From Guillardia theta CCMP2712 (Eukaryota > Protista > Cryptophyta), in the NCBI RefSeq assembly GCF_000315625.1, contig NW_005434620.1:185631-249630 (forward strand): 64,000 bases of DNA, given 5' to 3'. This document shows positions 1-6,917 of the stretch, piece after piece; within the stretch, counting starts at the first letter, position 1; every line of letters starts with the position of its first letter. Position numbers and translations under genes: made by a program. The notes below the pieces were generated by a model, which was given only the letters and a program-made list of their open reading frames with translations, was not told where the DNA came from and did no database searches.

Positions 1-59
1 TCCCTCCCTCCCTCATCCATCCTCCCTCCTCCCTCCTCTTTCCCTGTACTCCTCCCTCC

Positions 60-404
60 TCACTTGTGATAGAATCGCCTGATCCCTTCGCGGTAGGTCT
101 CTAGAGACTCATCCAGGTTGTCGAGCTCTTGCAGGCAGACAGCGCAGTTGTTGTAGTCGTCGGCATTCGCTTCCTCCTCCTCCATCATCGTCTTGTACAG
201 TTTGACTGCCTCCTCGTACTTCTCCTCCTGTATGTTCTCGATAGCTGCCTTCCTCCTTCTCACCGTCTCCCCCGACTGTCTGCTCGGCGTCACCGCCATG
301 ATGCAAGCACTTATGTAGAGGGTTGCAAGCATGAACCTCCTTGCACGACACATCGTAATCATCTTCTTCGTGTTGATCCTTGAGGAGCAATCTAGTTTCA
401 GCAA
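60..404 (-). CDS. TPR-repeat protein, first exon; runs off the window start
   Basis: KYEEAVKLYKTMM..ADDYNNCAVCLQELDNLDESLETYREGIRRF fits TPR consensus. Hydrophobic leader MLATLYISACIMAV. GTGAG donor near 63. Confidence 0.7.
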   Translation of the reverse strand: MLKLDCSSRINTKKMITMCRARRFMLATLYISACIMAVTPSRQSGETVRRRKAAIENIQEEKYEEAVKLYKTMMEEEEANADDYNNCAVCLQELDNLDESLETYREGIRRFYHK

Positions 405-918
405 GCAGAAGACTCTTCCCGTCTCGTCCTCCTCCCTCTCCTCCCGTCTCCTCTCCTCCCGTCTCCTCTCCTCCCGCTGCCTCCTCCTCTCCTCTCCTTC
501 TTCCTCCTCCTCCTCCTCCTCCTCTCACTAGCTCGTCTTGTCGAATCCTCGCATGGCTTCACTGCATCGTCACCTGATACCCCACCCTCTGGAATATTCG
601 AGTACCCGTAGTTTATGAGTCATTTATGGGGGTAATTCATTTCTGAGCAAGGGGTGGGGTAGGAGCTTGTGGAGCGCCCGACATGGATGTTATCAACATG
701 TCAACAGGTCAGTGGAGGAGGAGGAGGACGAGGACGAGGACGAGGAGCAGGAGGAGCATGAGGAGCATGAGGAGCAGCAAGGAGCAGGACGAGCAGGAGG
801 ACGAGCAGGAGGAGGACTAGGACCAGAACCAGAACCAGGACCAGGAGTATGAAGAAGAAAGGAGAGGAAGGAACAGCTTGGTCTATCGGGGAGCACAACG
901 AAGGGGAAGGAAGGGAGG

Positions 919-953
<35 letters not shown>

Positions 954-1001
954 GAAGAGAAAGGGAGGAGGTGGGGGAGTACCAGCATCGAAGTTAGACT
1001 C

Positions 1002-3713
1002 TTGATCTTGACGGCACCTTACATCAGGCCCCTGGTGCCCACCGGACATCACGACCCACCTCACTACACACCTGACAACGGGCAAGAGGTCTGCAGGCCC
1101 GTACCACAGCGCCAGGTATGTCCGAAGAGTGTGAATGCCTTGCTCGCGTTCTCCCTCCTGAGAGCTCCTCGCTTGCCCAGCGGCCCTCCGCCAGGTCCGG
1201 ATGGATGGGTCAAGGCGACTCTGCCGCACGGAGAGGAGATCTGGGCAGCCGTCGGCAGGTGACTCGAGCTAGGAAGGAGGGCAGGCGGCGTGACGGGGAT
1301 GCAGGAACGAGGTGGAGAGGATAAGGAACGTCGTGATCGTGGAGCGCAAGAACAACTCGAGCAGGTACCTCTGTCTCAAGTGTGGGACGACGTTCGTGGG
1401 GTCCAAGAAGAGGATCAAGGAGCACATGCGGGGGCAGGGCAAGGACGTGAAAGGCTGCGTCGAGCCCCCGACGGAGGAGGAAGAGGCGATTTTCCAACTG
1501 GATGATGCTAATTGCGGGGAGAGGGGTGCTGAGCGAGAGCGAGTGCGGGAGGACGTGGAGGAGGAGGAGGAGGAGGAGGAGGAGGAGGAGGAGGCTCTTT
1601 CTGATAACCACCAGCGTTCGCTCCCTGAGAAGAGGAAGAAGAGCGCTGGTGGGCAGGAGTGCTCGAGCCCGTTCCTTGCTAGCACGACGCCTCCGCTCAA
1701 CGACAGGTGGAAGAAGAGCAAGATGCCGGACGGGCAGGAGATCTGGGCAGCGGAACCCCGGAACGATATCGAGAGGATGAGCTGCATCGTGGTGCTGGAG
1801 CGGAGGGAGACGTCCACGAGGTACCTGTGCAACAAGTGCAACTACATGTTCTGGGGTCGAAGAAGAGAGTCAAGCTGCACCTGAGGAGGCAGAGCAGCGA
1901 CGTCAAGTGCTGTGTTGAGATGCCGACGCCGGAGGAGGAGCGGGTCCTCAAGGCGGACGACGAGGGGCATCGGAGCAAGGCGCTGCGGGGGGGGCAGCAC
2001 TACCATACGGCAGACCGGGATGAAGCAACGTCCTCCGACATCGCCGTGGTGAAGAGAGGCAGACCTTTGACAAGTCCGTTCCCAGCTTCGGGTGACCCCC
2101 CAGCTGGGGAGGGGTGGTCGAAGCTGAAGTTGACGGACGGGGCGGAGATCTGGGTGGGGGAGCCGAGGAACGCGATCGAGCGGCTGGGGAGCGTATGCGT
2201 CATTGAGAGGACGGGGAATGCGACGAGGTACCTGTGCCTGCGGTGCAACCTGATGTTTTGGGGGTCCAAGAAGCGGATAAAGGAGCATATGAGGAGGGAG
2301 GGGAGCAGCATCACCGGCTGCACTGTCGACCTCTCCTTCGAGGAGGAGGAGGTGCTGAGGACGGAGGATAACCATGGGGATGGGGCGGACGACTGCAGGT
2401 TCTCCAGCCCGTACCCAGCTAGCGGGCCTCCGCCGGAGGAGGAGGGGTGGAGCAAGGCGAGCCTGTCGACGGGGGAGGAGGTCTGGGCGGCAGAGCCGAA
2501 GAACGCGATCGAGCGGCTGGAGAGCATCCTGGTGGTGGAGAGGAGGAGCAACAGCTCGAGGTACTACTGCAGGAAGTGTAGCCTCTTCTTCTTCGGGACC
2601 AAAAAAAGAGTCAAAGAACATCTCAGACGGCTCAGCAAGGACGTCAAGCCCTGCGCCGTTGCGCCGTCGGAGCACGAGGAGCAGGTGCTCAAGGCCGACG
2701 ACTCGCTCCTCATGGTTCGCAAGGGATACGTCGACCCTGCCGCCGACAAGGGGGCGGGGAAGGGGGCGGCGGCGATGAGGGGGAGGAAGAAGGAGCGGAA
2801 CTCGCAGCTGGCGGCAGAGGCTGACCTGGCATGGTTCAAGCTGTTCGAGCGGTACGACATCCCCAAGAGAATCATCGAGACGGAAGAGGCGCGGGAGGCC
2901 GTCAGGAAGACGATCTTAGCTGGGCCCTCTTACCAGCTGCCGTCCAGGAGCAGGTTAGGTGACGACACCCCCGGACACAAGGCGGATCCCAACGGCAAGG
3001 GCGCCAAGGCTCGCTCGAAACCGGACGGTCTGATGTACCTGGCGGTGCAAGCGATGGAGGAGGAGGAGCAGGTGCTGAAGGAGGGGCTGGGAGAAGAGAC
3101 GGGTGGGTACGACCGATCCTCGTCCATGGATGTGCAGGAGCTGACGGAGCAGGGGACGAGCAAGCTGACGGGGATCAGGAAGCGAGCTGGGAAGCTCAAC
3201 AACCGGCTGTTGGACAGAAAGTCGCTCCTCTCCCTCCGCCTGAAACACCACTGGAGGTCCCAGGAGGCAGCCAAGGAGGCGGCAAGAGCGAGCACGAAAG
3301 CGCTAAGCAGCCTGAGCATGCTCAACGAGGAGTCGGCAGCGAGTGACTCGGAGCAGGAGGGGAGCCGGCATGTTGGAGGAATGGACCGAGCGATGCTCCT
3401 CGACGACGGAGGGCGGGACAGCCGCATGACCTTCGGGGGGAGGAGGGCGACAGACTTGGACCAGGGGCAGGGCATGCTCTCGAGCGTCATGGACGGCCCC
3501 AGCTTGCTGAACTCCAGCTCGAGCATCCATCCTCCTGTCTACTCCATGTCCATGAACCCTTCGAGCCTGTCTGCGAGGCTCCCAGCTCAAGTCCACCAGG
3601 TGCCTTTCTATGTGCCTGGTCCTCCTCCTCCTCCTCCTCCTCCTCCTCCTCCTCCTCCTCCTCCTCGCACCCACCCGCCTACCCGCCCCTCCCTTCCTCT
3701 TCTCGTAGACTGA
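1002..3713 (+). CDS. Four-repeat BED-type zinc-finger protein derived from a hAT transposase; intron 1259-1304, frameshift at 1853-1856, both ends uncertain
   Basis: Four ~100-aa units each with C-x2-C-x13-H-x10-C (e.g. YLCLKCGTTFVGSKKRIKEHMRGQGKDVKGC), followed by ADLAWFKLFERYDIPKRIIETEEAREAV..SYQLPSRSRL, resembling the hAT segment after the BED finger. Confidence 0.75.
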
Positions 3714-4011
3714 CACGACTTTCAGAGCCTGCAGCTTCCAGCCCTGCAAACGTCAGGCATGGACGACCTGCGATCGCCGTGGGTAGAGCAGGGCGATTTC
3801 ACTGCTCGCACGGACCTCCCTCCTCTCGAGCCCTCCGCCCTCGATCACCCGCTCCCGCGCGAGCCCTGGTCGGCCTCTCCCTCCTACCTCAACCACACCA
3901 TAGGGCAGCTGCCGCGGTACACGAGGAGCTGAGAGACTTTATGTACATGTACAGCAACAAGTTGTAAACTATCATTCTTTGACTTTGATTGCCGTTAGCT
4001 TCTCTCCCCTT

Positions 4012-4459
4012 TTACCTCTCCATTCCAACTCTGATGTACTTCTCTTGCTGCTCCTCCTCCTCTCCCTCCCCCTCCCCCTCCTCCTCCACTTTCTCTTCCA
4101 CTTCAACCTTGGAGATCGAGTCCGCAAATCGCCTCAAGTTCAGAGCCTCCATGACCTCTCTATTCGGCAGCGCTGCGACCTTGATCAGGATCTTGAGCAG
4201 GAGATTCTTGTGCGACTGCAGGTGGAGGCAGAGGACGACGACTTGCTTCATTTGCTCTTCCGGTATCGTCTCCTTGAATTCGGGCGGTGTCGGCATTGAC
4301 TTGTTGATAGACCTCAAAGTTTCCTTCATCCCCTGCGAGAGAAGATGATGTCAACAAAGAGAAGAAGAAGAAGAAGAAGAAGAATCAACACAACTGACAA
4401 CAACAACATCAGCACAGACAACAACAACTGTCTCAAAGAGCACCATATCACAACCTGAG

Positions 4460-4495
<36 letters not shown>

Positions 4496-6917
4496 TCTCA
4501 AAGAGCAGCACCATCCACACGATCACCTTGTTCTTGTCGACAAACCTATCAAGGTTCATGAACTTGTCCTGGTTCCCCGTCCCGTCAAGGAAGTCTTGCA
4601 TCCTTGCGCGGAACAGGATCGAACGCCGAAAGATCCCCCGGTACTCCTTCATGCGCGCCAAGTACTTGTCGCGCTCCCTGGAGAAGTTTCTCCGCAGGCT
4701 CTTCAAGATGCAGGTGAAGACCGAGAGCTTCAGCGATGCGTCGACGTGGAACTTTGACACCTCGGGCGACATTTTTGCCCAGTCAACTTGCTCGACGTGC
4801 TGGGCGAGGAGCTCAGGAGTCATGGCAGGGGTTGTCAGGAGTCACCTTGTACTTGGAGACATGGGCTGAGACGTCTTCACTCGCCTGCACTCACTCACAT
4901 CAGCGACCAGCAACTAGTCAAGCGTCAAGATCACCCGGCGGTGCTGAACTTTCTCCTTCATCAGCTCCGACAGCACTTGTCGCTCGACCTTCTCGAAGAT
5001 CACGTTGAGCCTTCTCCTCGATACTGCAAGAGGATCAGGGGAGCGCGAGGGAGTCAGCAAGGACACCTCTGGCTCGTTGGAGGTACAGCCGTATCTGACG
5101 CTGCAGCAGCACAACCTTCCTGCGGTAGGAGCGGATGTGCTCACGGATGAAGGAGACCTGTACCATGTAGTTCTAAGGACTCCTCCTCCTCCTCCCCTTT
5201 CCACATTACCCCTTTCCCCCCCTCCCCCTCCTCTCCTCCTCCTCCCCCTTCCCCCTCCTCACGTCGACGTACCCGCTCGAGATCTCTCAGGAAGGACACG
5301 ATGAGTTTCACTCGCCTCCCGTGCTTCCTCTGCCGCCATCTCGATATCACTTGCCGCCCCCACCTGCTCAGCCGCTCAAGAGCAGCGAGCTGCCTCTTGC
5401 GCTTTCTCGCTAGGAACTTCCGCCAGCACTTGGCGATGATGTCAACTTGCCGCGACCTGCGAGGGGAGGATGGAGCGATCAACGCGGGAGGGAGAGGAGC
5501 GTGAGAGGGAACCTGATCTCTTGCTTGAGCAAGTACCCCCGCTTCATCTCCAGCAAGCGAGCTAAACATGCAAGGATGGCCAGCCATTCTCTCTGCGCTG
5601 TCCTCTTCCTCTCAGCAGCGCTCTGCAGCAACAGCAGTCATGGACTTGACCAGCGCTCTCATGCCAACACCTCATAGTTGAACTGGATCTGCCGCTTCTG
5701 CCGCCGGAGAATCACACCCTCCATGCTCTCGCACTTGTTCAACATGTCCTCTGCCCTCCTTTGCAGAGCGTTCTCCATCTTCTCGACCCGCTCGAGGTTC
5801 TGCCGCAAGAGTCTCCCGCCCTTGTAAGAGGATCTGCCCGTCAAAAGCTCGTGCTTGTTCGCTCTCACGAAATCTTTCGTGGGTGACAAATCTGAGGACA
5901 GCACAGAATCAGATGAATCCCCTCCTCCTCTCTGATATGATATGATCTGATGTGCAACCCTCTCTTTCCCTCTACACTCCTCTCCTCCCCTCCCCCCTCC
6001 TCCTCTCCCCTACCCTCCCCTAACCTCTCCTCTCCTCTCCCCTCTCCCTTACCCTCCTCTCCCCTCCCCTCTCCTCGTCCTCCTCCTCCCCTCCCCTCTC
6101 CTCCTCTCCCCTACCCTCCTCTCCTCTCCTCTCCTAAACAACCTCGCTCACCATGAGACAAGTATGTTCGGTTAGATTCCTCCAGCAAGCTCACGTCGGA
6201 CTTGATGTTTGCTATCTTGCTCTGAATCTCCTTGACGAGCAAGGAGCGATCAGGCAACGGCTTGTCAACTTCGACTCTTCTCAGCTGACATCGGATCGAG
6301 TGGTTCAGCTGCTGGAGCAGCAGGCGCTCCTTCCGCATCTCCGCCTTGACGGTTTCCATCCTCTCCTCCTGCTCCCTCCGCGTCAGGCTCATCCTGGCAG
6401 TGTCGGATCGCACTATGTAGGGCTTCAGCTGCTGCTCGCGAGAGAAGCGCTCGGTGTGCTCCAGCAGTTCATGCCGATGCTCCCGGTAGGTGATGGCGTT
6501 GCGCAGTGACAGCTCCGACATCTCCTGCTGGACGCTCATGCCGCTTGTTTCCCTCGTTGTCATCGCCCTCCTCCTCTCATGCGGCGACGTGATCGCCGGC
6601 AGTTTGAGCTTGGGGACTCTGACCTTGTCTAACATGCCCCACTGCGTTCGCTGCACCTGAGCTCGCTTCTTGGCAAGGGCAGAGTTTAAGCGCGACCGCA
6701 TTTTCTCCATGTACAAGGCTTCCTCCTGGTGCAGGTACTGGTTGCATTTCCTCCAGAAGAGAGGTTGTTCAGGGAGGTGCTGGGGGTCGTTAGCTTGCTG
6801 TTGTGCCCTGCTCGCCTTCTCCTTGTCCTTTGAGCGCGTTCTTAGCTCATCTGGAGATGTTTTCATAGCGTGCATGTAGCCTGACCGACCTTGCTTCTTA
6901 TTACTGTGGTCGTTCAT
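4012..6917 (-). CDS. Multi-exon coiled-coil protein with an IQ-like calmodulin-binding motif
   Basis: Chain of same-strand exons separated by short GT-AG introns. IQ-like VDIIAKCWRKFLARKRKR at ~5400-5450. Long charged helical stretches. Confidence 0.6.

Follow-up and report, generated by a model that had tools for sequence, protein, structure and literature searches.

A four-finger gene and its conserved tail

The window analysed here is a 64,000-nucleotide (nt) stretch of the cryptophyte Guillardia theta CCMP2712 (contig NW_005434620.1, 185,631-249,630; assembly of 87 Mb in 669 contigs), and our subject is a zinc-finger gene on its forward strand together with the part of the encoded protein that follows the fingers, referred to below as the tail. 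The segment at 2800-3265 had been read in an earlier note as DNA-binding and dimerisation remnants of a hAT transposase from which the catalytic core was deleted. On balance, we think that it probably encodes the conserved tail of a nuclear DNA-binding regulator, the product of a host gene that is present in a single copy and carries an intron, with an ancestry undecided between the readings weighed below. The tail is encoded in an open reading frame (ORF) of 668 codons (1707-3713), which carries two motifs in frame downstream of the fourth CxxC..H..C finger unit (2397-2700): motif 1, ADLAWFKLFERYDIPKRIIETEEAREAVRKTILAGPSYQLPSRSRL (ADLAWFKLF...LPSRSRL), at 2820-2957 and motif 2, GIRKRAGKLNNRLLDRKSLLSLRLKHHWR, at 3171-3257, which begins 71 residues after motif 1. 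The presence of two such strings after the fingers and about 70 residues apart was thereby confirmed.

Both motifs are embedded in larger conserved elements. The tail opens with a basic patch, RGRKKER (2778-2798), at the start of block 1; it resembles a nuclear localisation signal and may serve as one, and GRKxKER is conserved among relatives. Block 1 itself (2787-2957) was delimited by conservation and by helices in an AlphaFold2 (AF2) model and consists of a helix, a D-I-P loop, a second helix and AG.SY.LPSRSR, with a ratio of non-synonymous to synonymous substitution rates (dN/dS) of about 0.09. It is followed by a near-invariant linear motif, GDDTPGHKADP..(K/R)G..ARSKP.G (2958-3029), that is basic, predicted to be disordered and has a dN/dS of 0.14, and then by a short conserved helix, GLMYLA.Q...EEE (3027-3086), seen in the alignment and in the AF2 model. 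A variable linker, Gly-rich among relatives and impossible to align, occupies 3087-3176. Block 2 (3177-3287), recognised by its conservation and by AF2 helix 146-176 (model numbering), comprises a second basic patch, RKRAGK, and then a helix some 30 residues long, LNNRLLDRKSLLSLRLKHHWR... The protein ends in a low-complexity region rich in Ser, Pro and Gln (3288-3713); this region contains a poly-Pro run (about 3615-3665) and is closed by a stop codon at 3711-3713. Across the family, the consensus reads GRKxKERNSQLAAEADLAWFKLFERYDIPKRIIETEEMREAVRKT..AG.SY.LPSRSRMGDDTPGHKADP.KRG..ARSKP.GLMYLALQ..QEEE for block 1 and the elements directly behind it, and RKR.NKTS.RLLDRKS.LSMRLK.HWKAKD for block 2. 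In block 1, the prolines of D-I-P and L-P-S, which lie 26 residues from each other, are conserved in all relatives whose sequences span them.

Relatives of the tail are few. A word search returned a single one, P0001, which is 45% identical and lies on L007, a 2.6-kb Tara Oceans metagenome contig, and a phmmer search of the tail against 1.84 billion (1.84e9) representative sequences yielded 10 clusters only, all of which come from metagenomes and represent short pieces of exons from this one gene family. Among these metagenomic relatives both motifs are conserved at 45-87% identity; for the blocks the identity is 54-87%, while the intervening linker cannot be aligned. L007 shows the same order of elements as the window, with fingers, block 1, linker, block 2 and a Q/H/P-rich low-complexity end. 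Substitution rates were computed against L007 and L019, and dS is saturated in these comparisons; an intron divides block 1 in L007, and the two exons served as separate references, with nothing joined. With that saturation, block 1 gave a dN/dS of 0.09-0.14, which points to purifying selection in the comparison that the earlier note had proposed, and finger unit 4 gave 0.23 against L007; for block 2, dS is too saturated for a ratio and dN is 0.24-0.42. Because both motifs are conserved across the relatives and dN/dS is low, we conclude that they serve a function in a host protein and are maintained by purifying selection.

The relatives also differ from the window in their introns. Block 1 is interrupted after FERY in L007 (1130-1222) and after RKT..A in P0008-P0010, and the window has neither of these introns, so that the placement of introns differs between members of this narrow family. 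P0011 (L017:2836-3219), the relative that diverges most, keeps block 1 and has a different ending, AGQDYVPSSLRQLRG... No recognisable finger unit was found in the 2.8 kb of L017 upstream of block 1, and the ORFs of this contig gave no Pfam match; block 1 may stand there in another architecture, or long introns may separate it from its fingers.

In the 87-Mb assembly, the tail and a profile of block 1 matched their own locus and no other, and the same was true of the finger units; the copy-number check thus returned one locus and not many near-identical copies. Inverted repeats within positions 1-6000 consist of (GAG)n/(CTC)n simple sequence only, so that the reported lack of terminal inverted repeats (TIRs) holds. 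Given a single copy and inverted repeats made only of simple sequence, a TIR-flanked multicopy element is excluded, and we rejected a non-autonomous hAT element on the same grounds. Runs of (GAG)n/(CTC)n and related triplets lie in and around the gene at 700-840, 1548-1595, 3615-3666 and 4040-4100; they code for tracts of poly-Glu and poly-Pro, and spurious inverted repeats result from them.

Upstream of the tail, four tandem finger units of about 100 residues each (approximately 1163-1500, 1650-1970, 2061-2360 and 2397-2700) share the pattern Y.C..C-x13-H-x10-C, that is, a Cys-Cys-His-Cys (CCHC) ligand spacing of C-x2-C-x13-H-x10-C. Unit 1 is split. Its N-terminal part (..PSGPPPGPDGWVKATLPHGEEIWAAVG) forms an exon piece at 1163-1258, assigned by homology to units 3 and 4, and its zinc-binding part (YLCLKC..KEH..C) lies at 1305-1500 and has a weak, below-cut-off Pfam match to zf-C2HC_3 (E 6.8e-4). 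Between the two lies a 46-nt GT-AG intron at 1259-1304 that is supported by homology between the repeat units: once it is removed, unit 1 reads ..IWAAVG-R-NEVERIRNVVIVERK.. and lines up with units 3 and 4 from end to end in the same order. The gene therefore does have an intron, as had been noted, but outside the tail. In unit 2 (1650-1970) the frame is broken by 1 nt within a run of G near 1853-1858, where MFWG is followed by SKKRVK; the pieces on either side were searched separately and the break was not read through. At 1850-1860 the window has TTCTGGGGTCGAAGAAG, and the other units hold one extra base after the G run. The break near 1857 could be an assembly error or a genuine frameshift. 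Unit 3 occupies 2061-2360, and unit 4 (2397-2700) is the last finger preceding the tail. Further upstream, a candidate second short intron of 47 nt lies at 1116-1162 (CAG, then GTATGT ... AG), and a candidate first exon, ATGGATGTTATCAACATGTCAACAG followed by GT, at 683-707.

In their tandem arrangement with Y.C..C...F.G.KKR.KEH.R, and with a low-complexity tail in the same protein, the units recall multi-zinc-finger transcription factors with C2H2-like beta-beta-alpha fingers. They differ from these in that a distal Cys (x10) serves as fourth ligand, that each finger sits within a unit of about 100 residues with an N-terminal extension, and that the linkers between units are acidic and not of the TGEKP type. 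The N-terminal extension (2140-2260) weakly resembles the segment that precedes the zinc finger in MYST acetyltransferases (W..P.N.I.R....V.E..G....YC; KAT6A, E 1.6-4), and this match of the finger profile is probably due to chance.

Searches for hAT sequence and structure

The N-terminal region of hAT transposases combines a zf-BED finger with the Hermes DNA-binding and dimerisation domain (PMC8097297), the Hermes BED finger has CCHC ligands (C51, C54, H71, C73) and the protein dimerises through an intertwined dimerisation domain (PMC10368747); DUF659 is likewise a hAT transposase domain (PMC3985635). We searched for these domains with Pfam hmmscan at E<=10, using the ORF, each tail piece and 13 relatives as queries, a procedure in which the HMMER filters drop weak matches. 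None of these queries matched DUF659, Dimer_Tnp_hAT, DBD_Tnp_Hermes, ZBED1_RNase-like or zf-BED. Profile similarity to hAT, on which the earlier reading had been made to depend, thus fails at the HMMER level in the window and the 13 relatives, and the likeness of the two motifs to hAT consensus strings does not rise above chance by HMMER. No hAT protein was found among the phmmer matches from the 1.84e9 representatives, and no blocks flanking an RNase H core were found in the contigs of P0001, P0007 and P0011 (L007, L017-L024).

When the tail and each of the two blocks were compared, as profiles and as single sequences, with Protein Data Bank (PDB) sequences, Hermes included, only chance matches were obtained (E 0.4-2), to a light-harvesting complex protein, an allophanate hydrolase and a calpain EF-hand. 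In the match to allophanate hydrolase, LAGPRYQAPTRQRLG is aligned with LAGPSYQLPSRSRLG at E 0.8; because this chance match looks similar, short transposase-like resemblances evidently arise easily. An EF-hand reading of block 1, suggested by the match to calpain (E 1.2), was rejected since the loop does not have the Ca-binding residues. The HMMER-level negative is not decisive, because CGGBP1, which is accepted as hAT-derived, also escapes Pfam (PMC8097297).

The AF2 model of the tail, computed from an alignment of 14 rows, has a predicted template modelling score (pTM) of 0.24 and shows isolated helices at 10-32, 36-39, 42-53, 90-109 and 146-176 (model numbering), without a globular core. The predicted local distance difference test score (pLDDT) is 70-79 for the block 1 helices 10-32 and 42-53 and 84-94 for the block 2 helix 146-176, and the GDDTPGHKADP segment is predicted to be disordered. 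Foldseek found no match to the tail model in the PDB. VIA-align, run against 48,161 chains, placed Hermes (8edg_A) at rank 1, with a Z score of 3.8, a root-mean-square deviation of 4.9 and 74 aligned residues that pair model 11..173 with chain 84..609; an N-terminal fragment of Hermes (2bw3_B, 80..132) was aligned with model 6..58 at rank 25 (Z 3.4). VIA Z scores below 8 fall in the range of common arrangements. For the block 2 helix, the best structural matches were coiled coils. A model of block 1 alone reached a pLDDT of 58, and its best 50 VIA matches were generic helix-loop-helix proteins, among them about 15 entries of the basic helix-loop-helix (bHLH) type, at Z 3.0-3.9.

A different kind of lead came from a feature search in the ESM Atlas. 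With the search restricted to named clusters, the Pfam-bearing ones listed for block 1 were PF10683 DBD_Tnp_Hermes (0.85), PF04937 DUF659 (0.82) and PF27041 ZBED1_RNase-like (0.80) and no others; all three cover the hAT region immediately after the BED finger; for the whole tail, a DUF659 cluster stood at rank 10 with a score of 0.81. The feature search and the structural match are two independent, non-sequence leads to a hAT origin of block 1, and both are weak.

Weighing the origin of the tail

Several results weigh against a hAT origin of block 1. Scores below 0.9 in the ESM Atlas, as all of those for block 1 and the tail are, count as a lead only. The Hermes Z of 3.8 is tied with that of more than 50 unrelated helical chains, dozens of coiled coils lie within 1 Z of it, and Hermes is absent from the best 50 VIA matches of the block-1-only model. 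A HMMER-level signal was found nowhere in the searches run; the fingers have no Pfam match to zf-BED (PF02892), and the PDB sequences that the finger profile matches best, though weakly (E 0.09-1), are those of C2H2 fingers. Whole-genome profile searches gave no match to PF05699, PF04937 or PF10683, a weak negative since their controls were prokaryotic and the PF05699 control was unmatched anywhere, and a genome search with zf-BED produced sub-threshold noise only. Taking all routes together, we put the descent of block 1 from the N-terminal DNA-binding and dimerisation region of a hAT transposase at somewhat short of an even chance.

The most far-reaching of these routes derives both blocks from one transposase: block 1 would be the DUF659/Hermes-type region and block 2 the last helix of the dimerisation domain, the RNase H/DDE core would have dropped out through an internal deletion of the kind seen in Ds-like derivatives, the finger would have been multiplied and the product domesticated. 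The ESM Atlas leads for block 1 are consistent with this, and so is the single VIA alignment to Hermes, which begins with the first ordered helix and extends as far as the C-terminal end (11..173 against 84..609); however, the placement of the helices is arbitrary at a pTM of 0.24, and this colinear alignment therefore weighs little. The case for block 2 turns on its helix, which contains an R-L; an R-L is likewise found where the C-terminal domain of hAT proteins ends. Against this, the 'RNRL' of block 2 appears among the relatives as NNRL, SNRL, SSRL, SKRL and SDRL, so that RL is its only constant part, PF05699 is matched neither in the window nor in any relative, and the helix matches generic coiled coils best. 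In hAT proteins, the last R-x-x-L helix of the C-terminal domain is preceded, at a distance of about 15 residues, by SS..SER.FS, in which the catalytic Glu lies; by reading, no such motif was found upstream of RKRAGKLNNRL in the window or the relatives, and the position is taken up by the variable, non-conserved linker. The roughly 100 residues between the blocks, GDDTPGHKADP among them, have no hAT counterpart either. Of block 2 as a C-terminal remnant, then, nothing but RL and a helix is left, and that it descends from the hAT dimerisation domain is improbable; the derivation of the whole tail from one deleted transposase is equally hard to credit. A reading that dispenses with transposases altogether takes block 1 for a degenerate bHLH module for dimerisation and DNA binding. 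The block-1-only model does show a basic stretch, a helix, a Pro-containing loop and a helix, and the bHLH entries that make up about 15 of its 50 best VIA matches are complexes with DNA (MYC-MAX, HES-1, CLOCK-BMAL1, E47/NeuroD1, MyoD, USF2). Their Z scores are in the noise range, though, the model has a pLDDT of only 58 and its second helix is short and acidic, and Pfam HLH (PF00010) has no match at E<=10 in the window or the 13 relatives, which makes a bHLH origin very unlikely.

Between these extremes stands a more limited capture, of the kind known from the CGGBP proteins, in which only the N-terminal finger and the Hermes-type region (block 1) come from a hAT element, the finger was amplified to four, and block 2 and the rest are host-derived. 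CGGBP proteins consist of zf-BED and the Hermes DNA-binding domain without the transposase core, are mostly shorter than 200 residues and/or intron-bearing (PMC8097297; Yellan, Yang & Hughes 2021), and arose through dozens of independent domestications of this same bipartite hAT region (PMC8097297). The family, represented by human CGGBP1 and by members in fish, insects and fungi, would be the closest precedent for the gene described here. In both cases a zinc finger is followed directly by a short helical region, there is no transposase core, and the host proteins, DNA-binding in the CGGBPs and probably so here, escape Pfam and often have introns in their genes. The placement of block 1 directly behind the last finger fits such a capture, as do the alignment of Hermes 80..132 with model 6..58 and the fact that the named ESM Atlas matches listed all belong to hAT N-terminal families; the two conserved prolines of block 1 may correspond to the two that are conserved in the helical region of CGGBPs (PMC8097297). 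In contrast to the single zf-BED and small size of CGGBPs, the protein here has four fingers with C-x2-C-x13-H-x10-C and an additional long tail (the invariant basic motif, the block 2 helix and the poly-Pro end); CGGBPs are recognised by a PANTHER/InterPro model. The present gene comes from a cryptophyte in whose genome hAT elements were not detected, a weak negative given the prokaryotic controls. The searches run gave no profile or sequence signal for such a capture, the structural lead was not recovered with the block-1-only model, the finger spacing is unlike C51/C54/H71/C73 of Hermes and nearest in sequence to classical C2H2 fingers, and L017 has no such finger in the 2.8 kb upstream of its block 1. 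We accordingly regard an ancient CGGBP-like domestication in cryptophytes, with the finger amplified to four and fused to a new conserved tail while hAT elements became undetectable, as a tentative possibility, and a doubtful one.

In Hermes, the N-terminal domain (79-150; PF10683; 2BW3, 8EDG) is likewise a helical region right after a zinc finger, but it shows no similarity to the tail at E<=10, and the protein here has no RNase H core, no insertion domain and no hAT C-terminal domain. With the sequence ..AQW..RPF....LPS...L, Hermes may resemble block 1 in the order of these elements (DIP, LPS). ZBED proteins and DAYSLEEPER/SLEEPER, domesticated hAT transposases that the earlier note had proposed as analogues, keep a transposase-derived core region. 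They too are single-copy host genes with zinc fingers, but they match Pfam zf-BED and Dimer_Tnp_hAT, whereas the protein encoded here matches neither and has no core. For the gene as a whole, two points count against our account of a host regulator: the gene model is incomplete at its 5' end, the start codon included, and the frame is broken by 1 nt near 1857, in finger unit 2. Both could also fit a decaying gene whose motifs are functionless leftovers, but the ORF of 668 codons that follows the break is uninterrupted and dN/dS against the relatives is 0.09-0.23 (with dS saturated), so that we consider a pseudogene highly improbable. The proposal of a domesticated regulator has come through in part: a host gene is indicated by the single copy, the absence of TIRs, the intron and purifying selection, and for the hAT ancestry the searches gave no profile or sequence support.

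Proposed function and implications

The protein is likely to act as a nuclear, sequence-specific DNA-binding regulator. In such a protein, the zinc fingers would read DNA, and the basic patches RGRKKER and RKRAGK could mediate nuclear import, make additional DNA contacts, or both. The helix-loop-helix of block 1 and the long helix of block 2 may allow the protein to associate with itself or with partners, the basic motif that is invariant and disordered might be a short linear interaction motif or a minor-groove element, and the Pro/Ser/Gln-rich low-complexity C-terminus would be suited to an effector region. The roles in import, dimerisation and DNA contact are proposed from composition and predicted helices alone, and this tells against the regulator part of our account.

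If block 1 is not derived from hAT, the gene would encode a zinc-finger regulator of an ordinary kind, restricted to its lineage, whose tail has two conserved modules not described before; such a result would be of value for annotation and unsurprising. Whichever ancestry applies, matches of short consensus strings to transposase motifs fall in the range of chance, and profile-profile or structural confirmation is needed before they are read as descent. If block 1 truly is a hAT N-terminal region, CGGBP-type hAT-derived DNA-binding proteins would reach a distant algal lineage. Such a case would be without precedent beyond animals, insects and fungi, would concern a protein that no current domain model would see, and would support the suggestion that domain models miss entire classes of such host proteins (PMC8097297). 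It would also mean that a regulator derived from a transposon family can persist in a genome that has lost the elements themselves.

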